IMG/VR virus record: IMGVR_UViG_3300026512_000002
Location: 1 to 64,000 of that record
Direction: 5' to 3' (one strand)
DNA: 64,000 nucleotides
The translations under genes were made by a program, and so were the position numbers. Of the stretch, positions 36,641 to 48,640 are shown piece after piece. Under the pieces are notes generated by a model. It saw nothing but the letters and a program-made list of their open reading frames with translations. It did not search any database and was not told the origin of the DNA. Numbering within the stretch: position 1 is the first letter of the stretch; each line of letters starts with the position of its first letter.

Positions 36641-38365
36641 TTAAACAATATTACTTATGATTATGTTTCCAAATTTTTTATCAGAATTATTGGGTAGTCC
36701 TATACGTATATATAGTTCTCCACTTCTCACAGTTGAACCAAATGTACATTTTTTAATATTTGTAGTTGATTCGGAATATACCATACCTTTATCACCATCA
36801 TTGACTGGTGACCCTACACCAGGATATGAAGAGTTGCCATTTAACCACCCTGTAACACCTTCAACTTTATAGTATATTTCAATCCCATTGGTTTCAACAC
36901 CTGACCATGTACCAATGGGATTTGGCAATGTTAATGTGAACGCACTGTTATTGTTCAATGTTACTGGTTTAAATGTAACCCATCTAGTACCACTGCCCAT
37001 ACCGGTACTATAGTCTGGTCCAGCAGTAGGGTTGTTTGTACTATAATCTCCATTAGGTGTACCGTATCTATTATCTAACATTTGTAATTCATCAACATAT
37101 GTTGATCGTAATGAAACAGTTGAATCAAATGAACCACCGTAGCCATTGGTAGGATATTGACCTGTTCCACTTATCACTCTAGGAGTTTCATCGCTAATAG
37201 TATCTATTCTAGCATTAGTATTAGTAGCTAACGGTGTTCCAAGTATAGATTTAGAATTACGACCCATTATATTTATAATTATATTTTCAACATAAATATT
37301 ATTGATAGTTGTTGTAGTAATATTATTCATAGTAACAGATGTGTAGGCTGTCGGTATAATAGATAGTGACACATCTATATTGTTTATTGCTAATGATTCG
37401 ATTCTAGACAAAGCGTTAATATAATGGCTACGAACAGCATCATCTATAGTATATGTACAATCTAATGTATCACCAACATCTAAACTAGGTACACCTGAAA
37501 CATATCTGGTGCATGATGCTGGTAAACCTATACTTGGCGAACTGATATTTGCATTGTCAGGATCATCAATATGCACATGTTTATCTGGAGTATTACCTGT
37601 AATACTATGTTTCATCACAAAAATATGTTCATCTACACTCAATGGTGTAACTGGTAAAATATATGCTTCTAGTTGAGAATATAACCCTTCACCAGCAACA
37701 CCTACATATGGATCAGTGTCAGATGTTATGAATAGATCATTATCTGAACCAACATCGTTATTGGTTGTTAACGTTATCGACCCCATATTCGTACTATCTA
37801 TTTCAGCATCTAAAACACCGTTAGCACCATCACCGAAAGCTTGAGACACATATGCTCTAGGCGTATTGTCATCAATACAATCAGCATGTGTTGTTCCTGT
37901 ACCAGATTCTAATGCTGTATAAAGATTATCTATTATCAATACTAATGTTGATAGATCTGGTGGTGGTGGTGGTGCTAATTTTTTCAACATTGTGTTTAAA
38001 TCATCTATAGCATCATCTTTTTTATAAGTGTTGTCGGCTGGCCATTGAAAAAATCCATCAGTATAGGTACCATCTGTAGGTGACCCTAATGTATCACTAC
38101 CACTACCACTAGAAAATTCAACCCACCCAGTATTATCTAATGTATTTAGCAGTTGATATGTTTTAGCTGAACCTGTACCATCATCTTCAACTGTACAAAA
38201 CATACCAATATATCTTCGTTCTGGTATTATACTGTCTCTATCAACAATATCTAGTTTATGGTGAACACCTCCCAATATTTCATTAGAATGTGCTGATGGT
38301 ATTGGATCATTGGGATCTTGAGGTCTAATAGGTGCTGTGATTAAGGTTCCGATATTATTAGGCAT
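36641..38365 (-). CDS. Virion structural protein
   Basis: DRDSIIPERRYIGMFC head motif; LGSPTDGTYTDG; beta-rich body. Confidence 0.65.
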   Translation of the reverse strand: MPNNIGTLITAPIRPQDPNDPIPSAHSNEILGGVHHKLDIVDRDSIIPERRYIGMFCTVEDDGTGSAKTYQLLNTLDNTGWVEFSSGSGSDTLGSPTDGTYTDGFFQWPADNTYKKDDAIDDLNTMLKKLAPPPPPDLSTLVLIIDNLYTALESGTGTTHADCIDDNTPRAYVSQAFGDGANGVLDAEIDSTNMGSITLTTNNDVGSDNDLFITSDTDPYVGVAGEGLYSQLEAYILPVTPLSVDEHIFVMKHSITGNTPDKHVHIDDPDNANISSPSIGLPASCTRYVSGVPSLDVGDTLDCTYTIDDAVRSHYINALSRIESLAINNIDVSLSIIPTAYTSVTMNNITTTTINNIYVENIIINIMGRNSKSILGTPLATNTNARIDTISDETPRVISGTGQYPTNGYGGSFDSTVSLRSTYVDELQMLDNRYGTPNGDYSTNNPTAGPDYSTGMGSGTRWVTFKPVTLNNNSAFTLTLPNPIGTWSGVETNGIEIYYKVEGVTGWLNGNSSYPGVGSPVNDGDKGMVYSESTTNIKKCTFGSTVRSGELYIRIGLPNNSDKKFGNIIISNIV

Positions 38366-38461
38366 ATTATCTCCTAAAAAAATAAAAAAAAAGGAGGATA
38401 GTTATTAAAACTATCCTCTTATATAATAATATTTAAATAATAAGAAGTACTAAAAAAAACT

Positions 38462-38555
38462 CATTCCATTGCTTATGGTATTTTAATCATAACACATTCC
38501 ATTGCTTATGGTATTTTAATCATAACACATTCCATTGCTTATGGTATTTTAATCA
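38462..38555. repeat. 33-bp tandem repeat x2.8
   Basis: CATTCCATTGCTTATGGTATTTTAATCATAACA repeated exactly, with no spacers. Confidence 0.95.
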
Positions 38556-38607
38556 CATTTTCAATACTTCTTATTAAAAAATTGAAAACACATTATTTAT
38601 TATATTG

Positions 38608-40161
38608 TTATATAAAACTCTTTATTGTTGAAACTCTAAACATCCTATGTCGTCTTCTTTCAGTAACTATGCCACTATAGCTTAATTCACCTACTTTACC
38701 TGTACTTTTATCACGTAATCTGAATCTTACAGTATGTGGTTTTCTTTCAGGAGACCACTTAGTTGCCATATTATCGTTACAAGTACAAAGCCATTTGTTT
38801 GAAGTTATTCTTAGCCTAGAAGTAGCTGTATCCATATCAGTATTACTATCGAAATCACTAGATGTTAATCTTTTAATATATACATAGTTTTGCATATCAC
38901 TATTACTATATACAATTTCTAAATCATATTTAGACCAATCGAATAAATTTGTTACAATTGTATCAATACCCATAGGTCTGACTACAATAGCTTTTTTTTT
39001 ATTATCAGATTCATCTTCAACACCAATTATTGCTAGAACACTAGCACCGTTATTCATGTCTTCATTTATACTTTTTCTATCATTAATCAGATCATCTAAA
39101 ACATAATATGATGATGGTGTGTTAAAAACTAGATATTGTGGTAGGGTAGATTTAATGTATCTACCAGCACCACCTCCCCAACCATCATTAGCTGAAACAT
39201 ATGCTTTATCAGTATCGTTATATGCATACCTACTGTTCCCAGTACCATATGGGAAATATATTGAATATGAGTCAAATATTTTATCAAATCCAAAATAACC
39301 ATATTTATTTTTTTTAGCATTACCAACCCAAATAGTACCAAGTAAATTTGAACCATCTGTACTTGCAACAGGTGTTGCTGGACCATGTACATTATTATAC
39401 ATGTCGGCACAAGCATCCAACATTTGATCATTAGCATGAATAGCTGAACCTGTACCAGCTACAGTGTATCTAAGTTTACCTTTGAGAGCATAGAAACTTC
39501 TGTTAAACCCATTCATTTTTGTGATATGTGGAATACTATTATCTATTTCATCATATGGTAACAAGATCATATTATGTGCAGATACTCCGCCTGGTGTATT
39601 ATCATTCAACCATGTTATAATATCGTTTAATGTTGTGAATTTTAAACCATCGTATTCGTCATCTGTGGTCGTGTTTAAAATTTTACATTTAACACTAGGT
39701 CCCCAAATAGCATCCCATTGATCTAATAATAATGGTGCAAATTTTTGATTACGGGATCTAAGTTCTGATGTTGATGTCGGATAAGCTTGTCCAGACATAG
39801 CTAAAATAACTTCATCAAGATATATTCTTTTATCAGTTTTTTTATTCAAATCAACTAATGTTGAGTTAGTTAATCTCATTTCAATGATATCTCCTATTGT
39901 TGCGGAAATAGCACTTGTACCATCAACACCTCGTTCAACAGTTAAGGTATCTCCACTCACTGCTGTTACTTTCATGATTTCAAGAACTTCTGGATATATT
40001 CCTAATGAATTTTTTTCTACAACTGTGATATAAAACCAGTCTGATGGACCTAATACTGGGAAATCTGATCCTGTACCAGTATCAACACTTATACTTGTAT
40101 CTGTTGTATTAATATCTGCTGCTAATTTAGTTCTTATGTTGTTTTTTAATAATACACTCAT
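38608..40161 (-). CDS. Tail protein
   Basis: N-terminal NN..TKLAADI...FP...EIMKVTAVSGDTLTVERG.DGT phage tail module. Confidence 0.75.
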   Translation of the reverse strand: MSVLLKNNIRTKLAADINTTDTSISVDTGTGSDFPVLGPSDWFYITVVEKNSLGIYPEVLEIMKVTAVSGDTLTVERGVDGTSAISATIGDIIEMRLTNSTLVDLNKKTDKRIYLDEVILAMSGQAYPTSTSELRSRNQKFAPLLLDQWDAIWGPSVKCKILNTTTDDEYDGLKFTTLNDIITWLNDNTPGGVSAHNMILLPYDEIDNSIPHITKMNGFNRSFYALKGKLRYTVAGTGSAIHANDQMLDACADMYNNVHGPATPVASTDGSNLLGTIWVGNAKKNKYGYFGFDKIFDSYSIYFPYGTGNSRYAYNDTDKAYVSANDGWGGGAGRYIKSTLPQYLVFNTPSSYYVLDDLINDRKSINEDMNNGASVLAIIGVEDESDNKKKAIVVRPMGIDTIVTNLFDWSKYDLEIVYSNSDMQNYVYIKRLTSSDFDSNTDMDTATSRLRITSNKWLCTCNDNMATKWSPERKPHTVRFRLRDKSTGKVGELSYSGIVTERRRHRMFRVSTIKSFI

Positions 40162-40179: not shown

Positions 40180-40554
40180 TTAGTATTTATATTTTACTAT
40201 TATTTTATCATTAATTGTTAATGTAAATGTTGCATCAAACGTGATTCTCGTCCCACTTATACTATAATCGTTTCCAGTACCATCATCTAATATTATACCG
40301 TTGTATATGACATTTAAATGTTCATTAGTTTTTGGAGTTTGTGATAAATCAATATATGTGTTAGTTATTATTGTACTGTTTACAATATATTTATCTGTTA
40401 CAACTATACCATTGGTTGATGCCGTGTTAACATATAATCCACTACTATCAGATTCGATACCACCATTTGGTTTTAGCAATAATGCTAAAACCTTTTTACT
40501 GGTTTCATTAAAATGTTGAGTATTTTTTGCAATAAATCCTGAAAAGATTTTCAT
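40180..40554 (-). CDS. Small tail-fibre-associated protein
   Basis: VIYNG...GNDYSISG domain shared with the C-terminus of 25847..27625; late promoter at 40584. Confidence 0.7.
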   Translation of the reverse strand: MKIFSGFIAKNTQHFNETSKKVLALLLKPNGGIESDSSGLYVNTASTNGIVVTDKYIVNSTIITNTYIDLSQTPKTNEHLNVIYNGIILDDGTGNDYSISGTRITFDATFTLTINDKIIVKYKY

Positions 40555-40671
40555 ATAGTCACCTGTAATGTAAGTTATATAATTAATAATTTGTTATTTA
40601 ACATATTGTTGATTCATATATGTAATGTTACAAGCAATAAACATATTATTAAATAAAGCGGGGTCGTATAT

Positions 40672-43149
40672 ATGAAAAAATACAAATGTCCTTTTGATGG
40701 TCGCAAATACGTTACTAAAGAAAGTTTATATGAACATTTGGAATATAAACATAAAAAAGAATTGAATGGTTTATATCCAGCCCAATTAATGTTTAATATT
40801 AGAAATCATAAAACTGGTGGTAAATGTATAGTATGTGGTGCTCCAACTAAATGGAATCCAGTAACAGAAAAATATAGTCGTTTGTGTGGTAAAGAATCAT
40901 GTCGTAAAGAATTAGCTAATATTGCTAAAAAAAATATGATTAAAAAATATAATAAACCTCATTTGTTAGGAGATCCTGAACAACAGAAAAAAATGCTTAA
41001 AAATCGAAAAATATCCGGAACATATCAATGGAAAAATGGGTATAAGCACGATTATGTTGGTAATTATGAAAAAGATTTTTTATTATTCACAGAATTTGTA
41101 TTGAATTGGACAAATCCTGAAGATATAGTTATGCCGGCACCAATTAGTTTCAAATATTATTTGAATGGTGAAGAACATTTTTATATACCTGATGTATACA
41201 TTACAAGTGTTGATCTATATGTTGAAATAAAAGGTTCGAATAATCATTATCAAAAACGTGATCACGAAATGGAAGTAGCTAAAGATGAGATGATGATCAA
41301 TAATAAAGATATTAATTACATTAAAATATTGGATAAATCATATGCTGGCTTTGTCGAATATTTACATAAGCGTATTAATGGTACATCAAAATATGTGTTA
41401 AAAGAAGAGTTGTATAGATATAATGTTAACTTAAGTGTTTTAAATGATAGTGAGGTACACGATATTGGCGATACTGATGATGTTGTAAATGAATGGCCAC
41501 TGTATTTTGAAGAATCAAATCACGAGTATTTTTTAGGACAGATGTTAGCATTTGGTTATACTGATAATGCCCCAACATTTGCATATAGGACTTTGTATGG
41601 AAAAAATCCAACTGAACGATTAAATGGTATGACTAATGCTCCTAAAAAAAAATGGAATAATTTAAAGGTAGATGCTTGTTTGAAAGATAAATGGTTGGAT
41701 AGAATAAATAATTTGCCAGTAGAAATACGAAGTACAGATTGTGGTAAAAGTTCCGAACGACCAGCATTCGTAATATTTAGGATGAAATCTGGTGAAGATA
41801 TATTAGCTACTAAGTTAAGTGATGAATTAAATAAATTAAAAAATATTAGTAGTTTAGCTGAAAAAGGTCGTGCTGGCAAATATAGGGTTAGTGTTGTCGG
41901 TAATACATGGGAAGGTCAATCTGATTGGAAAAAATGGTGGGATAACGTACATATAGCAATATTGAATAGTTATAATAAAGTGGTTAAACGTGAGGGGTTA
42001 TCAGAAAATCAATACGACTATTATGATAACAGTAGTGGTGAAAACATGCTTTTAACGGAAGATAAACATAATCCCTATAAGAAAAATGTTGCCAATAATA
42101 GTTTATATTACCATGCTAGTCCTTATCAAAATATAGATAAGTTAAAAATAAATAAGAGTAAGGTCAAACATACTAAAGATGGTAAACCTAAAATATATGC
42201 TAGTGATGATATGTCATATGCTGCTGGGTTTTGCTTTAAATGGGATGGCGATATTAAATATTATAGTAAAAAAAACGGAACATGGGTGTTAGAAATACCT
42301 AAATCTGCCAAGGTTACACTTAATGAGCCAGCTAGTATGTATTTAGTTGAACCTGATAGTTTTAGAAAAGCATCAACTCCAACACCTGAAGTTATATCAT
42401 TTAAAGATGTGAATATTGTTCGTGAAATAAAATTTAAAACTGCTAGAGATTGTTTGAAAAATTATGGTGTTGATGTTATCTTTGTAGATAATAAGAATGT
42501 GAAGAAGGGTAATATTGATGCGTTATTGGAGGTGTTAAAACATAATGCTAGGACCAAAGATAATGGTTTAGGTAAAATATACTTAGCAACTCATAATGAG
42601 TTTAAAATAAACGATTTTCAGAAATATAATGATGGAGCATTTTTTGTGTTAAAAGATATACCAGATATCGATGAAGTTGATTCTAAAAACGTGATCGATA
42701 TAGCTAAATATAAAGCATTGGATATGTATAAAATAGTGAAAGATCAAATACCTCCAAAAGCATCAATTGCAATTGAAGACACTTCATTAGATGTTAACGG
42801 TGAAGATGTTGGTGGTAATATTAGGTGGCTAATAAATGAGTTGGATAAATTTGTGGGTAAAAAAGCTACCGTAACTATATGTGTTGGCGTATGCGATGGT
42901 AAATATGTTAAGGTATATAAAGCTGATTTAAAAGGAAAAATGATCTCGCCAACAGTTAATGGTTATGGTTTTGACCCATATGTTGAAATAGATGGAATAC
43001 CTCTATCATATATAGCTAAAAACAAAAGATTGTCTGATAAATATTCATTGCGTAAGAGAATTGTTGCTAAAATGAAAAAAGATGATTATGTAGAAATCTT
43101 CGATGTTGACAATATTAAACCTTGGACAGGTAAATATCAACAACATTAG
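40672..43149 (+). CDS. Multidomain effector: Zn fingers + TnsA-like PD-(D/E)xK nuclease, unknown domain, ADP-ribosyltransferase-like domain, Ham1/ITPase domain
   Basis: YIPDVYI...VEIKG; YYHAS...IYAS...EVIS (H-Y-E ART pattern); IYLATHNEFK...IEDTSL...GYGFDP (Ham1). Confidence 0.8.
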   Translation: MKKYKCPFDGRKYVTKESLYEHLEYKHKKELNGLYPAQLMFNIRNHKTGGKCIVCGAPTKWNPVTEKYSRLCGKESCRKELANIAKKNMIKKYNKPHLLGDPEQQKKMLKNRKISGTYQWKNGYKHDYVGNYEKDFLLFTEFVLNWTNPEDIVMPAPISFKYYLNGEEHFYIPDVYITSVDLYVEIKGSNNHYQKRDHEMEVAKDEMMINNKDINYIKILDKSYAGFVEYLHKRINGTSKYVLKEELYRYNVNLSVLNDSEVHDIGDTDDVVNEWPLYFEESNHEYFLGQMLAFGYTDNAPTFAYRTLYGKNPTERLNGMTNAPKKKWNNLKVDACLKDKWLDRINNLPVEIRSTDCGKSSERPAFVIFRMKSGEDILATKLSDELNKLKNISSLAEKGRAGKYRVSVVGNTWEGQSDWKKWWDNVHIAILNSYNKVVKREGLSENQYDYYDNSSGENMLLTEDKHNPYKKNVANNSLYYHASPYQNIDKLKINKSKVKHTKDGKPKIYASDDMSYAAGFCFKWDGDIKYYSKKNGTWVLEIPKSAKVTLNEPASMYLVEPDSFRKASTPTPEVISFKDVNIVREIKFKTARDCLKNYGVDVIFVDNKNVKKGNIDALLEVLKHNARTKDNGLGKIYLATHNEFKINDFQKYNDGAFFVLKDIPDIDEVDSKNVIDIAKYKALDMYKIVKDQIPPKASIAIEDTSLDVNGEDVGGNIRWLINELDKFVGKKATVTICVGVCDGKYVKVYKADLKGKMISPTVNGYGFDPYVEIDGIPLSYIAKNKRLSDKYSLRKRIVAKMKKDDYVEIFDVDNIKPWTGKYQQH

Positions 43150-43360
43150 TATAATGTTAATAATAGGATATTGTGGATATGTTTGAAATAATAAATGTTA
43201 TAATAAAAAAACCTGTTTCAGGTAACACTTTGTCAGAGGCACTACAAAACGGTGTTGACAATATAAAGGAAAAGTAAATAACCTCGTTCTTCGTAATCTA
43301 AATACCATATCGAGTATATATTATATTTAGGTATGCTAGTATTATTTATAGGAGAAGAAT

Positions 43361-43981
43361 ATGGGCAAGAAAAAAAACAGTACGAAAAAAACAATTGAAG
43401 AAATTTTCGCAGAACTTAAAGAACTCAGTTTCAATGAAAAAATTAAAATAACTATTACCGAAATGGGACAAGAAAAACCTTTAAAAGAATTAATATCTTT
43501 GCTACCGAATATATTCGGTAGCAAAATAGTTAAAGGTGGTTTATTCACTATAAAAAATAGAGTGAACAAATTAAAAATAAATACATTGGTACCAATATTA
43601 AGTGAACAGTTAAATCCTGGTGGTACAATTTTTGTATATTATTTAAAATCTACAAATAAACTTATGTTATTTGCTAATGGCCTAGATGCAGAACTATCTA
43701 AAGATAATGCAATATATAAATATTATGATATTACGAGCGATTTAAATATACCCGAATATATTATATTTATGGGTTTATTCGGAGACACTTTTAATGAAAA
43801 CGAAATATTGAGTTTACAACACAAATATAGCAATTATTTAAATTTGACTAAATCAGGTAATTCTCATATGCTTAAAATGACACCAGTAAAATATAAAGAA
43901 TTTATTACCGAGTTAGGTAGAAGTTTAAGTAGTCCAAAATATATAAAAATAATAGTAAGAGAAAAGAACGCTTTTGAATAA
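43361..43981 (+). CDS. Hypothetical early protein
   Basis: SD AGGAG; TATATTAT-N6-G upstream. Confidence 0.75.
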   Translation: MGKKKNSTKKTIEEIFAELKELSFNEKIKITITEMGQEKPLKELISLLPNIFGSKIVKGGLFTIKNRVNKLKINTLVPILSEQLNPGGTIFVYYLKSTNKLMLFANGLDAELSKDNAIYKYYDITSDLNIPEYIIFMGLFGDTFNENEILSLQHKYSNYLNLTKSGNSHMLKMTPVKYKEFITELGRSLSSPKYIKIIVREKNAFE

Positions 43982-44056: not shown

Positions 44057-47000
44057 TTATACATAATATGTTATGTTCACATCAATGGTATCAAATATTT
44101 CACCATCTAAACGCAAACCATTCCATGTTACTCTAGTATTATCACCACTATCTATTTCGTAATCAACACCATTGATTTGACTAGGAGCGCCTTCCACTTC
44201 AAATGATTTTATTTTTTTAATAGGTTCTCCGACACCAATATACTTGTTAGCGATGTCTGTAGACGTTAAAGTTGTAGAGTATACTTTTTCTACAATACTA
44301 TGTAGTCGACCAGTATCAGTATCCACTATAACTTTAGCATTATTGTTTGGTAAACTATTTGTTGTTTTAAGAGCATTTATAATCATACCGTTTGTATCTA
44401 TAATAGCTTCGGTGATTATTGATCCATATGAATCACCCACAATAAAAGTTAACTGTTTAGTATTATCAACAGTACCTATTAAAATATTTTGATCGGTCAA
44501 TAATGCACCGTTTCCAGCTAATTCAGATATATAGAAATTATCACTATATATTCCAAAATATACATTGTCCTTATAAGCTATTGTTGATTTGTGTAATTCT
44601 ATAACACTGCCAGCACTATTACCAGTATTAGTATTTTGCATTGTTAACCAAGTATATCCATTATGGTTATTTATGATTTCAATACCTTCAACACTGTTAT
44701 TTATCGGAGTCAACCTATCTCCATTGGTAAACTGCCATTGGATATTAGCCATTGAATATGTTTGAACAACATTTAAATCATCTACATTGACAACATCGTT
44801 TACATTATTATTGCTAATCATCCAACTTGTATTAGTATTAGACGACCCTTCCAGTACTTCAAAAGTGACACCAGCAGATTTATAACCAACAGGCATATCA
44901 GCTGTTCTTACCCAGTTACCAGAATCGTTTACAGTGTAAAAACCATCTTCACTTGTAGTTGTTTGAGCAAAAACACCAACTCTATCTCCATCTGTAGTCG
45001 TCACACCATCTATAGTTCGATTCCCATTTAATGTAACATTATTTGTTATATCAATTAATCTGATTGGTTTTTTAGTTAATTGATTTAAATCAGAATATGC
45101 TCTTGTGATTAATTCCTTATGTGCATCACTCATAGGAGTATTTGAACTATCAATACTTTTATTATCATCATCTATTATATGGTCAATCTCTTTTATTTTA
45201 ATAATATCTTTAACAGGATATTTATTTAATTTTACAAGCTCAAACCATGGGCTGTCAGCAATAGGGAGAGTGTTACTCTGGACAAGAATACGAAAACCAG
45301 CAAATTGATATCCACGACCTTTTGGGAACAAATATCTATATAAATAACTTCCATCGGGCAACAATGTAGTTTCTTCAGGTCCCATATATGCGCCGTTATG
45401 ACCATATACACATAGACATGTTTGTGTTATACTAGGATCCATGTTTGTTATCAAGTAACCATTCCAGTTCGTAGGATTGTCATTATAATCTGTGCCACGT
45501 AAAACATCTTTGTTATATGTTTCACAGTAACCACTACCATCATCAGCAAGATTTAAAGATATACGACCATTGACAAGTGTTGCAGGCGAAGTACTTGTAT
45601 CAAATGTAAAACCAGTAGTTGCTATATCATGTTTCCATGCGTCATTGACTAATAAGTTATAATCATTTTCAGTAGATCTATAGATCATGCTATTTGAAAT
45701 GGCTTCGATTGTCACATTGTCTACATTATTTTTTGTTACATCTACATATTGTCTAGTAACGAGTTCTTTATATGATACTTCATCATTTGCATTAGTAATG
45801 AAACTATCTATACTGAATTTATCAGCACCAATGATTTTATCAATACTAACTATTGATATCTCGCTTCCAGTAGTAGGATACGCACCTTTTTTAATGAATT
45901 GTAGGAATGTTGCTTGGGGTGGAGCTGATTCAAGTCTCATATCTGCAAATCTAAAATCACCATATGTTACTGTAAATTTATGCAAATATCTACCTTTTTC
46001 TAAAACAGATGTTGCATAAATAGTTCTAGGGTTTGAATATGCTACTGATTCCATTATTTTTAAATTATATGGAACTAAATCATAATTACTATATAGGTAG
46101 TATGTTCCGTTTCCTAATATAGGGGTATTGTTATTCGTAGGAGGAGGAGAAACAGGATCAGTATGAATGGAAAAATATGTGGTTTGATTTCTAGGAGCGA
46201 ATAAAACACCATTACTTGCACTTGTTCCCGTGTTCAACCCAACATAATTGGAAAATGTTGTATCAATGTACCATGTCTCTAACAGGATGTTTTTTATATA
46301 ATCATTGGTAGACACATCTGCTTTAGCATCAACATATTCTATTGTATCATAGTCTACTTTAGTAGGATCTAATTGTACTACAGTTTCTTGAATTATAGTC
46401 CAACCACCTATATTAGAATACCTGATTCTTAATATACCGTAGTTAGTATCAATTATAGTGCTTATATCACCATTTAATGTGTTAACCACACCACTACCAG
46501 GTGAAGTAGAGACAGTAACAGTAATATTATTTATTGCAGCATTTCCTTTAATGTCTATAAATGTGTATTCTAGAGCATCATATGGTTCTGGTGGTAGTTC
46601 CAATGATATAACATTAGAAGAAGTGTCACATTCCACATTTAGGTTTAGAGGAGGTACTATAAAACCACTGTTATGACTTATTGTATTATTATTAATCACC
46701 ATTCCTGAAAAGGCATCTTCTACCATCGTACCTTTTATATCACTATTTGTCACAACAGGAAAGTATACTTCATTACCAGTACCTTGTGATCCTTCCATGT
46801 GCCCAGACCATTCCACATTCTCAATCGTTATATCTTTAAAATATACATATCTTGTCATATCACTAGATTTGGTATAAAATGATGAATTTATTATTTGAAC
46901 ATTGTCAAACATGATATCGGATACTGACCCTACACCATTCATCTTAAAGCCTTGTAACAATGAACCGTTCTGGATAATACAGTCGTTTAATTGTAAATGA

Positions 47001-48640
47001 GAACCACTAATATTAGCGTTATCGTACATTGCAAATACACTAAAATATCCATTAGTATTCGTAATACGTGTAGAATCATTCATATGAAGATGCCAAATAT
47101 TGGAAACATTGACATTGCTTAATATATTTATTAAAGATCTATCGATTCTTCCTATTTCGCATCCAGTTATACCATTTTTTTGAATAATTGATGTCATCTC
47201 CTTTATATGACTATCTACCAACTGAGAACCTGGTAAAAATATAGAACCTACAACATAATCGATTTTTGTATTTCTAGCATATGTGTTTAGGAAATACACG
47301 CCATCAGCATTATATATTTCAAAATTATTCATGTTTACATTTTCAAATATAATAAATCGACTATTTTTTATCTTTATATTTTTCAAGTCACAACTTCCAC
47401 TCAACATCGTTTTAACAATGTAGTCATTAGTTCTAACATCATGTAAAATTTCTCGATGGGGGTTGCTTGAAGGATAATCTATTCTAGGACTAGACATCGT
47501 AATGCTGTATTTAGTTGGAGAACAGTACCATAAATTATCACTATTATAAAAATCTATTCGAGCGTTATATAAACCGAAAGAATAATTTCTAAAATCAAAA
47601 TCAACATCAATATTATTTCGTAAATCATGTCTTTGTAATATACATCCTTTTCTAAACTCCGGAGAAGCAAACATACCACCTAATTGAACAAAATATCTGT
47701 CAGTGGATAATTTAAAAGTATATCCGTTTAGTAGTGTCAGTATGTTTGTTGTCTGATCCCAAGTAGCATCTACGCCTATTTGTAAATAAGCATATGAACC
47801 ATCATCTCCAACGGTTACATATTGATCGCTCTCTAAAACAGTGTCCTCTCCTAAATATAATTCAGTATCGCTAAGAAAATTTATTGTAAAGTAAGGGGTG
47901 TTGTTAAAATCCCATACATAACCATTACTGAAACCATAGTCGCTATCATATATTGAATTATCACTTCGATACACGTCAACATAGAACCAACCTTCTTTTG
48001 TCATACTTGGTGTATATATGACCAAATCATCAGGATGATCCAAATCAGTTACAGATGCTTCTAACATATTATTACTAATTGCTTGTGCTAATAAGGTGAT
48101 ATCATTAGATTGATGTGTTATACCACTATTTTTTAAAATTTCATTATTTGTTTGAATATCAGATATCTTATAAAGGTTTCCTGGTATCAATGATTGGTTT
48201 CTTATCAATAATCTTAATTCATCATATGTAACATTAATTATAGTTTGACTGGCTGTTATATTGCTCCACTGGCTACCATTGAAAGTATATATTTGGTTTT
48301 CTGCTTTAACATATACTCCCCATCCTTGTTCAGGTGTAGTGAACTCCCATACGTTATCTACTGGGTTCCATGTTCCGATCTCTTGTTCATGACCAGTCCA
48401 ACTTCCAACTGCTCCTGTTGGAATAATATACCTGCCCCAATTCACTAATGTTAGTGTGGCCGGATCTGTTGTATTAACTGTTTCAGCTGGTATTTCCCAA
48501 GTATGCGTGATAGTACGTTTTCTACCATCAGAATATATTACTTGTAAACTATTATCTAAACCTGTTTTAAGTCTTACATAATTCGATTCGGGAGATATAT
48601 TGTTTTTACTAGTTTTAATATCTATAATACTATTTTTCAT
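44057..48640 (-). CDS. Large mosaic tail fibre (DUF2793-like N-terminal module, beta-helix, fibre modules)
   Basis: RYIIPTGAVGSWTG...W.F..P..GW; TIDGVTTTDGDRV...DGFY; late promoter at 48691. Confidence 0.8.
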   Translation of the reverse strand: MKNSIIDIKTSKNNISPESNYVRLKTGLDNSLQVIYSDGRKRTITHTWEIPAETVNTTDPATLTLVNWGRYIIPTGAVGSWTGHEQEIGTWNPVDNVWEFTTPEQGWGVYVKAENQIYTFNGSQWSNITASQTIINVTYDELRLLIRNQSLIPGNLYKISDIQTNNEILKNSGITHQSNDITLLAQAISNNMLEASVTDLDHPDDLVIYTPSMTKEGWFYVDVYRSDNSIYDSDYGFSNGYVWDFNNTPYFTINFLSDTELYLGEDTVLESDQYVTVGDDGSYAYLQIGVDATWDQTTNILTLLNGYTFKLSTDRYFVQLGGMFASPEFRKGCILQRHDLRNNIDVDFDFRNYSFGLYNARIDFYNSDNLWYCSPTKYSITMSSPRIDYPSSNPHREILHDVRTNDYIVKTMLSGSCDLKNIKIKNSRFIIFENVNMNNFEIYNADGVYFLNTYARNTKIDYVVGSIFLPGSQLVDSHIKEMTSIIQKNGITGCEIGRIDRSLINILSNVNVSNIWHLHMNDSTRITNTNGYFSVFAMYDNANISGSHLQLNDCIIQNGSLLQGFKMNGVGSVSDIMFDNVQIINSSFYTKSSDMTRYVYFKDITIENVEWSGHMEGSQGTGNEVYFPVVTNSDIKGTMVEDAFSGMVINNNTISHNSGFIVPPLNLNVECDTSSNVISLELPPEPYDALEYTFIDIKGNAAINNITVTVSTSPGSGVVNTLNGDISTIIDTNYGILRIRYSNIGGWTIIQETVVQLDPTKVDYDTIEYVDAKADVSTNDYIKNILLETWYIDTTFSNYVGLNTGTSASNGVLFAPRNQTTYFSIHTDPVSPPPTNNNTPILGNGTYYLYSNYDLVPYNLKIMESVAYSNPRTIYATSVLEKGRYLHKFTVTYGDFRFADMRLESAPPQATFLQFIKKGAYPTTGSEISIVSIDKIIGADKFSIDSFITNANDEVSYKELVTRQYVDVTKNNVDNVTIEAISNSMIYRSTENDYNLLVNDAWKHDIATTGFTFDTSTSPATLVNGRISLNLADDGSGYCETYNKDVLRGTDYNDNPTNWNGYLITNMDPSITQTCLCVYGHNGAYMGPEETTLLPDGSYLYRYLFPKGRGYQFAGFRILVQSNTLPIADSPWFELVKLNKYPVKDIIKIKEIDHIIDDDNKSIDSSNTPMSDAHKELITRAYSDLNQLTKKPIRLIDITNNVTLNGNRTIDGVTTTDGDRVGVFAQTTTSEDGFYTVNDSGNWVRTADMPVGYKSAGVTFEVLEGSSNTNTSWMISNNNVNDVVNVDDLNVVQTYSMANIQWQFTNGDRLTPINNSVEGIEIINNHNGYTWLTMQNTNTGNSAGSVIELHKSTIAYKDNVYFGIYSDNFYISELAGNGALLTDQNILIGTVDNTKQLTFIVGDSYGSIITEAIIDTNGMIINALKTTNSLPNNNAKVIVDTDTGRLHSIVEKVYSTTLTSTDIANKYIGVGEPIKKIKSFEVEGAPSQINGVDYEIDSGDNTRVTWNGLRLDGEIFDTIDVNITYYV

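Follow-up and report, generated by a model that had tools for sequence, protein, structure and literature searches.

A four-module nuclease, ADP-ribosyltransferase-like and Ham1 polyprotein as a putative virion-packaged, protease-matured effector of an AR9-group jumbo phage

The window analysed here comprises the first 64 kb (64,000 nucleotides, nt) of the 227,696-bp IMG/VR virus record IMGVR_UViG_3300026512_000002, which has a G+C content of 28%, is ~89% complete according to CheckV and derives from an uncultured phage in a hydrothermal-vent metagenome. On its positive strand lies P0001, an open reading frame (ORF) of 825 amino acids (aa) that joins four modules: an N-terminal zinc-finger nuclease, a conserved domain of no named family (domain A), a predicted minimal ADP-ribosyltransferase (ART) fold (domain B) and a divergent Ham1/ITPase-like nucleoside triphosphate (NTP) pyrophosphatase. 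The linkers between the modules carry short motifs ending in [L/I/V]-x-E, and we consider it moderately probable that P0001 is a virion-packaged effector polyprotein, matured by the prohead protease, of a jumbo phage of the AR9/PBS1/phiR1-37 group. The features of the locus, in window positions, are as follows.

40641-40652, + strand: AR9-type late-promoter motif AACATATTATTA, of the form AACA-(6N)-TA, 31 nt 5' of the ATG
40672-43149, + strand: P0001, four-module polyprotein ORF, 825 aa, uninterrupted, stop codon at 43147-43149
40672-41376, + strand: module 1, zinc finger(s) plus PD-(D/E)xK nuclease, aa 1-235, from PHROG 15137 and motif
41377-41565, + strand: linker 1, aa 236-298, acidic and poorly conserved, outside any homologous domain, also containing V272-N-E274
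41395-41406, + strand: junction site 1, V242-L-K-E245, putative cut after E245, kept in fusions
41566-41991, + strand: module 2, domain A, aa ~299-440, from a 61-sequence alignment, no named family
41995-42006, + strand: junction site 2a, G442-L-S-E445, after the last helix of domain A
42049-42060, + strand: junction site 2b, L460-L-T-E463, followed by DKHNPYKKN, kept in relatives
42082-42492, + strand: module 3, domain B, predicted minimal ADP-ribosyltransferase fold, aa 471-607, from fold match and conserved residues
42520-42531, + strand: junction site 3, A617-L-L-E620, 16 aa before the Ham1 core, with equivalents in relatives
42577-43146, + strand: module 4, divergent Ham1/ITPase-like NTP pyrophosphatase, aa 636-825, from Pfam PF01725

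The whole ORF is spanned, with 0 differences and at a depth of 18, by an independent 13.4-kb Logan contig from the probable source run. A second study (run X2, 2025) contains low-depth, near-identical (~99%) pieces over window positions 40500-43300, one of which covers the passage from linker 1 to domain A. All runs in which the sequence was located are DNA runs. The fusion thus exists as DNA and is not an assembly chimera, and because the ~99% pieces come from a second independent sample, the phage or a very close relative occurs beyond one metagenome. By its capsid protein, nuclease and promoter motif the phage belongs to the AR9/PBS1/S6/phiR1-37 jumbo-phage group, though distantly, with 25-50% protein identity. 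The initial annotation had described a single plus-strand ORF of four modules at this position, and its boundaries agree with ours within ~20 nt, except that the conserved core of the unknown domain starts later than stated because it is preceded by a linker of ~63 aa. Three of its four domain calls survive profile or structure comparison, and the domain it had called unknown is indeed without assignment. Each of the four modules forms an independently folding unit that is found elsewhere as a separate protein or in other combinations, and a Pfam search finds no peptidase domain in P0001 itself.

Module 1 matches PHROG 15137 ('endonuclease') over profile positions 1-233 of 236 (E=1.4e-68) and scores 26.2 bits against Pfam DUF7487, just below the cutoff of 27. 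Its stand-alone relatives in AR9 (g233), PBS1, BpSp (gp288), S6-like phages and phiR1-37 (g237) are 236-238 aa long and share 39-51% identity over aa 1-233; they have the same zinc-finger and PD-(D/E)xK layout, and P0001 runs 590 residues further. AR9 g233 is annotated as 'endonuclease fused to N-terminal Zn finger domain', and the nuclease motif IPD174 ... E185-I-K187 is kept across 15 aligned homologues. Of the earlier description of this module as a zinc-finger/TnsA-like nuclease, the zinc finger holds and the nuclease is of the PD-(D/E)xK type by motif and PHROG, whereas a likeness to TnsA was not established, there being no TnsA Pfam match at E<=1 and no PDB sequence match. The nuclease occupies a conserved locus among AR9-group phages, which in AR9 and BpSp adjoins a baseplate gene and lies near a guanylate kinase gene. 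The only virion evidence for the family is the GenBank note on the stand-alone phiR1-37 g237, which reads 'phage structural protein'; a search for virion data on AR9 found none.

Twenty-seven long proteins, P0001 and 26 others of 455-1,388 aa, begin with this nuclease and differ in their cargo; the module starts at residues 1-10, in one case at residue 39, and several of these proteins are encoded on contigs of 217-251 kb. Behind the nuclease in the 26 are GNAT acetyltransferases, a metallophosphoesterase, P-loop kinase-like segments, the ART module (P0174) and Ham1 (P0002). P0002, from another sample, is a single ORF comprising the nuclease, a different middle and Ham1, and the ART module recurs in P0003 as well as in P0174. 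A further relative (L016) encodes the nuclease, a different middle and the ART module, then a stop, a ribosome-binding site and, 15 nt downstream, a gene for Ham1 alone. In P0178/P0179 the last ~40 nuclease residues and the junction are duplicated before a second cargo block (residues 220-262 and 485-527), which suggests insertion of cargo by recombination at the junction. A nuclease homologue also forms the N-terminus of JDFnp1_83 of Fusobacterium phage JD-Fnp1 (L020:3549-4721, 390 aa), annotated 'DNA gyrase subunit A' and followed by a 'cysteine peptidase' gene. This protein has no Pfam gyrase match and the annotation looks wrong; since Pfam does not support it, the gyrase label does not contradict reading the nuclease as a carrier of cargo.

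A HMMER search with residues 236-640 retrieved 247 proteins at E<=1e-3, belonging to two separate and widespread families that correspond to domains A and B. Domain A, in which the initial annotation had noted an IRSTDCG motif, contains VEIRSTDCGK. This is the core (I/V)E(I/V)R(S/A)(S/T), conserved in a large family that has no counterpart in Pfam. Its motifs run NAPTFAY ... VEIRST ... RPAFV.FR ... G..R ... W..WW, and eight residues (A, D, G, R, G, R, W, W) are invariant in the 61-sequence alignment. The AlphaFold2 (AF2) model of the domain has a predicted local distance difference test score (pLDDT) of 90, and searches of five structure libraries with it returned only generic alpha/beta-sandwich fold matches. 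The domain occurs alone or in proteins of up to 2,505 aa, where its partners include an ATP-dependent DNA ligase (11/30), an XkdF-type phage protease (7/30), Dam and C5 methylases, an MBL nuclease, DprA, a pyrophosphatase (InPase) and Tad3. These partners are the domain set of the 'polyvalent proteins' (PMC5512222), which gives domain A a polyvalent-type context. In P0004 (L007:6001-7386) an identical 11-mer, EWVQTSGGLME, stands on either side of domain A at residues 45-55 and 212-222, and in several stand-alone domain-A proteins Gly/Arg-rich repeats (GRGMGRG..., GRGNGRG...) directly precede the domain.

For domain B, the proposal of an H-Y-E ART-like domain agrees with the ART fold of the structural model, in which the candidate H, Y and E residues stand in the expected order on predicted strands. 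The candidate key residues are H481, Y509 (with Y516), S555-x-Y557, E573 and E585; among 41 family members, H481 is conserved in 34, Y509 in 34 (with Phe in 5 more), Y516 in 29, E573 in 40 and E585 in 39. Compared with the Arr rifampin ADP-ribosyltransferase, Tpt1-KptA, diphtheria-toxin and PARP folds, domain B shows 8-21% identity and no match to a Pfam ART family. The nearest Pfam family is DUF6886 (PF21820), matched by 9/41 members (best E=1.3e-5), and ART-PolyVal (PF18760) is matched weakly by 2/41 (E=0.04); P0001 itself (residues 455-612) matches neither. Searched by tblastn, neither the ART-like module nor its stand-alone relative P0129 has a match in 50,697 GenBank phage records. A profile of the domain run against PDB sequences returned a coronavirus nsp3 segment alone, which was discarded as spurious.

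The Ham1/ITPase call for module 4 is upheld by a match to Pfam PF01725 above its gathering cutoff (29.2 bits against 22.5, profile positions 1-185 of 186) and by retention of the catalytic Asp; the Ham1 copy of P0002 scores 48.6 bits against the same profile. The module contains THNEFK, EDTSL (with the catalytic Asp), GGNIRW, YGFDP and S-L-R. Among PDB entries it aligns with the ITPase 8ji1 (E=1.9e-4), pairing THNEFK with TGNMNK, EDTSL with DDTGL, GGNIRW with GPYIKW and YGFDP with FGWD, and with KomB (E=2.8e-3). P0002 and the stand-alone relatives P0153 and P0154 keep the Asp of EDTSL too. ITPA/RdgB and KomB share with P0001 the Ham1 fold and the signatures T-x-N-x-x-K, E-D-T-x-L, G-x-x-I-(K/R)-W and (F/Y)G(W/F)DP; unlike them, the P0001-type Ham1 is fused to, or encoded beside, effector modules in phages. 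KomB, the HAM1-like sensor of deoxyinosine triphosphate (dITP) in the Kongming defence, has its Asp replaced by His, whereas the P0001 module retains it and is for that reason predicted to hydrolyse and not to sense. The signal in Kongming defence is dITP, and the only phage counter-measure described is depletion of its precursor by T5 Dmp; no report of a phage dITPase was found in the literature. An anti-deaminase or anti-dITP role of the Ham1 module, as proposed initially, fits this system and is plausible.

The motifs VLKE, GLSE/LLTE and ALLE had been pointed out in the linkers, and all are present, one or two in each of the three; 4 of the 10 [LI]-x-E triplets of P0001 lie within 128 linker residues. 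Four independent lines of comparison bear on their meaning, the first being the nuclease fusions. In ~25/27 of them, a count that is not phylogenetically independent, a hydrophobic run and [I/L/V]-x-E directly follow the nuclease, and the next residue is S, G, A, D, E or N. Examples, with a slash for the putative cut, are VLKE/E, ILKE/D, ILGE/S, IITE/D, RINE/S, RIHE/G and RVHE/A; the linkers around these junctions vary in length and sequence. The stand-alone nucleases AR9 g233, BpSp gp288 and phiR1-37 g237 stop 8-25 aa before the motif. Site 1 is conserved in P0002 and in the L016 ORF, and within the same linker of P0001 pLDDT falls to ~45 at aa 285-294. At site 2a, past the last helix of domain A, model confidence collapses; the L016 equivalent is ILSE/S, and the same type of tetrapeptide occurs in the phiR1-37 capsid propeptide (ILSE/N) and in the protease of the present phage (ILSE/N). 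Site 2b falls within a segment of the domain B model with pLDDT<50 and has counterparts in P0003 (ELLTE/DKHNPYKKN) and L016 (VLGE/TKHNPYK). Sites 2a and 2b thus presumably lie in flexible segments of the modelled chain. With cleavage after E463, 17 aa would precede the catalytic His; in stand-alone members of the ART-like family the number is typically 15-19. At site 3 the counterpart before the P0002 Ham1 is VITE/D; separately encoded Ham1 (P0153; L016, behind its own GGAGA site) has an [LI]-x-E at its N-terminus, MKFKSLKDIILGE/S.

The phage encodes a candidate for the protease that would recognise such sites. A Peptidase_S77 (T4 gp21-family) match of 42.5 bits, above cutoff, lies at G000 126547-126972 on the minus strand, within a head module (G000:C1 124951-132491) that also contains a Glu-rich 188-aa putative scaffold, a virion structural protein (phrog_18911) and the following genes.

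G000:C1 126253-127077, - strand: S77 protease ORF, from the Peptidase_S77 match
G000:C1 128133-129938: major capsid protein, predicted cut after V-T-E86, in the head module
G000:C1 130578-132491: large terminase (TerL), in the head module

The S77 protease ORF ranks first among 168 ORFs for [LI]-x-E enrichment (11 triplets where 3.9 are expected, p=4e-4); one site lies near its N-terminus and a cluster lies behind the catalytic domain, and the ORF contains no [SAG]-x-E. The adjacent Glu-rich ORF is likewise enriched (p=0.015), a pattern that parallels T4, where gp21 processes itself and the scaffold is cut at multiple sites (PMC9026906). The GenBank note on the phiR1-37 major capsid protein precursor, g135, gives its 'mature N-terminus at Ser87', directly behind L-Q-E (residues 84-86); the aligned capsid sites are AILQE/S in AR9, EILME/S in Madawaska and DMVTE/S in the present phage, and the capsid propeptides hold more such sites (ILSE/G, RLSE/G, ILSE/N, TLKE/S, ILGE/G). 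The phiR1-37 mature N-terminus, the aligned sites and the enrichment in the S77 ORF point to a T4-like [L/I/V]-x-E specificity for the protease of this group, not the A-x-E or S/A/G-x-E of SPN3US/phiKZ, a prediction anchored in that GenBank note. As to the earlier proposal that the L-x-E junctions of P0001 are prohead-protease sites, P0001 taken by itself would make it weak, since the triplet is not significantly enriched there, whereas the comparisons lend it substantial independent support. Next after the protease in [LI]-x-E enrichment (z ~3-3.6) are six ORFs: three adjacent minus-strand ones of 341, 233 and 358 aa at G000:C1 163642-166510, and three others at 112254-113941 and 147216-149636. 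None of those at 163.6-166.5 kb, 112-114 kb and 147-149.6 kb has a PHROG match, and they are candidates for protease-processed internal head proteins.

Similar sequences head stand-alone proteins in other lineages, those of unrelated uncultured phages. Among 31 stand-alone ART-like proteins, 24 have [LIVMF]-x-E in an N-terminal tail, compared with 12.9 +/- 2.4 for shuffled tails (maximum 21 in 2,000); ten other ART-like members have no such tail altogether, so that it is dispensable. On a 4.3-kb contig (L017:2479-3853, Logan SRR21424281), three adjacent genes, whose enzymes (a DUF5661 protein, the ART-like P0129 and a GNAT) are unrelated, share a nearly identical leader of ~10 residues, MN.YQ(I/V)VSE/SL; the called start of the GNAT gene is probably 12 codons too early. 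On another, of 4.5 kb (L021:712-2920, JGI 3300027887), both a GNAT gene and P0057 start with a leader ...ESYLLE/(I/L)Q. The leader recurs inside a 283-aa GNAT protein and also inside P0057, where it separates a Peptidase_M23 module from an ART-like one. This pattern points to gene fusion and fission around the leader peptide. T4 internal proteins (IPs) likewise share a short capsid-targeting sequence (CTS) that is removed by gp21; unlike in T4, the leaders in L021-type phages also stand at internal junctions.

The promoter motif before P0001 suggests when the gene is expressed. The initial annotation had proposed a late promoter here, and AACATATTATTA fits the AR9 late-promoter consensus AACA-(6N)-T(A/G) (PMC5312081). 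The motif occurs <=100 nt 5' of 59/178 crude genes genome-wide, whereas shuffled sequence gives 18 +/- 4 and the antisense strand 33, and its distance to the ATG has a mode of 30-40 nt, within which the 31 nt of P0001 falls. P0001 is accordingly placed, by its promoter sequence, with the late-expressed genes of AR9 type. An overlapping 'early-like' CATATTAT was not borne out, as it agrees with the AR9 early consensus at only ~10/13 positions and has no G at +6N. Inspection of the in-frame Met codons of P0001 and of the seven AACA-N6-T(A/G) motifs within it showed no module start with both a promoter and a ribosome-binding site. Downstream, TATATATTAT-ATTTAG-G at window positions 43315-43331 (+), 5' of a 206-aa ORF at 43361-43981, resembles the AR9 early-promoter core with its 6N-G spacing, and in AR9 too an early promoter is annotated after the nuclease gene; in the window, however, the TATATATTAT-N6-G pattern does not stand out statistically, with 2 matches where 1.0 is expected. 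The polyprotein gene is flanked on both sides by genes on the opposite strand.

36641-40161 and 44057-48640, - strand: tail-fibre-like genes of 574, 517 and 1,527 aa, flanking P0001

The C-terminal third of the 1,527-aa tail-fibre-like protein also matches 'head decoration / virion structural' PHROGs. The immediate neighbours of P0001 at 40180-40554 and 43361-43981, and the neighbours of P0004, have no PHROG match. The upstream 124-aa gene has no similarity to g232, which encodes the baseplate wedge in AR9, and synteny between the two was therefore rejected.

Taken together, the constant nuclease, the junction motifs and the head protease suggest the following course. The nuclease module would bring the whole chain into the assembling prohead or virion, where the prohead protease would cut after E245, E445/E463 and E620 and release a nuclease of ~29 kDa, a domain-A protein of ~23 kDa, an ADP-ribosyltransferase of ~18 kDa and an NTP pyrophosphatase of ~24 kDa. 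All four products would enter the host together with the DNA and take effect as soon as infection begins. Judging from their families, the nuclease may attack host or competitor DNA and the ART product may modify a host target in an NAD-dependent manner; if the phage has deoxyuridine-containing DNA (dU-DNA) like its relatives, discrimination by the nuclease against thymine DNA is conceivable. The Ham1 product would remove non-canonical (deoxy)nucleoside triphosphates ((d)NTPs) such as (d)ITP or xanthosine triphosphate (XTP), either as house-cleaning or to destroy a nucleotide immune signal. We infer packaging, cleavage, injection and the anti-dITP role from sequence comparison.

Parts of this scheme are already known: T4 Alt and the IPs are packaged in the head and trimmed by a protease, the ejection proteins of phiKZ-like phages are matured, and polyvalent proteins combine several effectors. 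In T4, gp21 cleaves after L/I-x-E, the ADP-ribosyltransferase Alt is packaged in the head, trimmed by gp21 at both ends and ejected, and proteins fused to IPIII or to its targeting sequence are carried into the head (PMC9026906). With IPI, IPII, IPIII and Alt the proposed course shares prohead loading, gp21-type trimming after L/I-x-E and ejection; an S77 protease is encoded here, and stand-alone ART relatives have leaders of ~10 aa ending in [IVL]-x-E that are common to neighbouring unrelated genes. However, each T4 protein has one N-terminal leader, whereas P0001 concatenates several enzymes with internal sites and begins with a folded nuclease of 235 aa, not a peptide of 10 aa. Alt belongs to the R-S-E clade (PMC5512222), whereas the P0001 ART would be of the H-Y-E type, near the Arr/Tpt1/DT-PARP folds, and the processing of P0001 is predicted. 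The inner-body ejection proteins of phiKZ and SPN3US are matured by gp175 and gp245, gp21-like proteases that cut many head-internal proteins after x-x-E (PMC10052503, PMC9026906); there the motif is A-x-E or S/A/G-x-E, and the cuts remove N-terminal propeptides and do not separate enzyme modules. Polyvalent proteins (Iyer, Burroughs, Anand, de Souza and Aravind, 2017; PMC5512222) contain 2-15 effector domains, among them ARTs, GNATs, nucleases, methylases and peptidases, and are encoded among late or structural genes; packaging and delivery along with the DNA, in some cases following proteolysis, are predicted for them. P0001 has at least two effector-type domains (>=2) in a late/structural setting, as they do; polyvalent proteins are processed mainly by in-chain zincin-like peptidases (PMC5512222), whereas the P0001 sites match a separate prohead protease. 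A term search of the main text of PMC5512222 found no mention of Ham1, ITPase, XkdF or DNA ligase.

A number of observations weigh against packaging and cleavage of P0001. Its [LI]-x-E triplets, taken alone, are not in significant excess (10 against 6.6 +/- 2.4 in shuffles, p=0.12), and ~10 further [LIV]-x-E triplets lie inside its folded domains, so that the triplet alone cannot specify cleavage; the comparative junction counts carry the phylogenetic dependence noted above, and the P1' residue is Ser at the capsid site but E, N, D or V in P0001. Documented virion cleavages by the gp21 family mostly remove N-terminal propeptides, and the proteins known to be cut at several sites are those of scaffold and core, not enzyme polyproteins (PMC10052503, PMC9026906). 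The nuclease has no N-terminal leader of its own that would take it into the prohead, and the virion proteome of BpSp (shallow, 23 proteins) does not list the homologue Gp288. No activity can be inferred for domain A, and the Ham1 module is very divergent, scoring 24 bits against a cutoff of 145.35 for the RdgB/HAM1 equivalog TIGR00042, so that its substrate cannot be inferred from family membership. Some of these points agree with a reading that we hold to be rather unlikely, in which P0001 is an uncleaved, cytoplasmic, multifunctional late enzyme of DNA and nucleotide metabolism that serves replication or packaging and is never itself packaged, its L-x-E motifs being incidental linker composition; it could, for instance, combine a nuclease with NTP house-cleaning in a phage with possibly dU-DNA, Ham1 excluding unwanted dNTPs. 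The lack of enrichment and the gap in the BpSp proteome would be expected of such an enzyme, the late genes of AR9 include non-virion functions too (PMC5312081), the Ham1 fold is classically one of house-cleaning, and a guanylate kinase gene lies near the nuclease locus in AR9 and BpSp. Yet it leaves unexplained the recurrence of the junction motif in ~25/27 fusions with unrelated cargo and its absence from the stand-alone nucleases, the identical leaders at N-termini and internal junctions in other phages and the 'structural protein' note on phiR1-37 g237, and ART and GNAT cargo is typical of host-modifying effectors, not of replication enzymes.

Location raises another difficulty: with tail-fibre neighbours here and a baseplate neighbour in AR9 and BpSp, the protein may be tail-associated and beyond the reach of the head protease. 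Separately, the conserved junction may owe its conservation to a structural role as a strand, or to being a hot-spot of recombination, and not to proteolysis. The location fits a polyvalent protein packaged in the head, or attached to the baseplate or tail, and injected intact or processed by a protease other than that of the prohead, the junction acting as a hinge or recombination cassette. Unprocessed polyvalent proteins (the N4 virion RNA polymerase, vRNAP) and self-processed ones are both documented (PMC5512222), and the duplicated junction cassette of P0178/P0179 looks like a recombination footprint; we nonetheless judge this improbable, as the junction motif matches the specificity inferred for the head protease of the group, P0001 has no peptidase domain of its own and the like leaders on stand-alone modules point to head targeting of the T4 type. 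A further notion is that the nuclease is a mobile homing endonuclease that landed in frame before unrelated genes, the fusions being accidental and without shared function. Free-standing PD-(D/E)xK and zinc-finger nucleases are common homing endonucleases in large phages, and the module does stand beside many different sequences, but its conserved locus in AR9-group phages, its invariably N-terminal, in-frame position followed by the junction motif and the occurrence of similar cargo swapping without the nuclease make this very improbable. That the long ORF merely joins separate genes through an assembly or sequencing artefact could be argued from L016, in which Ham1 has its own gene, 15 nt behind the ORF that carries the ART module; given the 13.4-kb contig, the second-study pieces and the same single-ORF design in P0002, the likelihood of this is close to nil.

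The virion-packaged, protease-matured polyprotein is the reading that we carry forward for P0001, and a wider one may be drawn from it tentatively. A system of 'carrier plus cleavable cargo' could be general in AR9-group jumbo phages, with other leaders in unrelated uncultured phages: a virion nuclease would serve as the anchor, an [I/L/V]-x-E cassette as both cut site and recombination point, and the CTS-bearing H-Y-E ART family, domain A, GNATs, kinases and Ham1 as cargo, the injected Ham1 being possibly the first phage destroyer of a base-modified immune signal such as Kongming dITP. A constant nuclease anchor with an [I/L/V]-x-E cassette and swappable cargo was not found described in the literature covered, which for PMC5512222 comprised the main text, and the same search of the literature found no description of an H-Y-E ART-like family with T4-style leaders, of domain A or of Ham1 as packaged cargo.

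Two uncharacterised families are defined by this analysis, namely domain A and a minimal ART-like family of the H-Y-E type without a match in the 50,697 GenBank phage records searched, and the Ham1 module is nominated as a candidate for counter-defence by hydrolysis of non-canonical nucleotide signals. If the proposed course holds, giant phages would load enzymes into their capsids in a way outside the T4 and phiKZ models, by fusion behind a packaged protein from which the head protease separates them, and would carry a pre-packaged arsenal for the first minute of infection that is easily exchanged by recombination at a conserved junction. It would also provide a sequence rule for recognising injected effectors in metagenomic phages, namely a shared leader or junction ending in [I/L/V]-x-E together with a protease of the gp21 family, and the carrier-junction design could be used to deliver proteins with the genome in laboratory phages, as has been done with the T4 targeting sequence.

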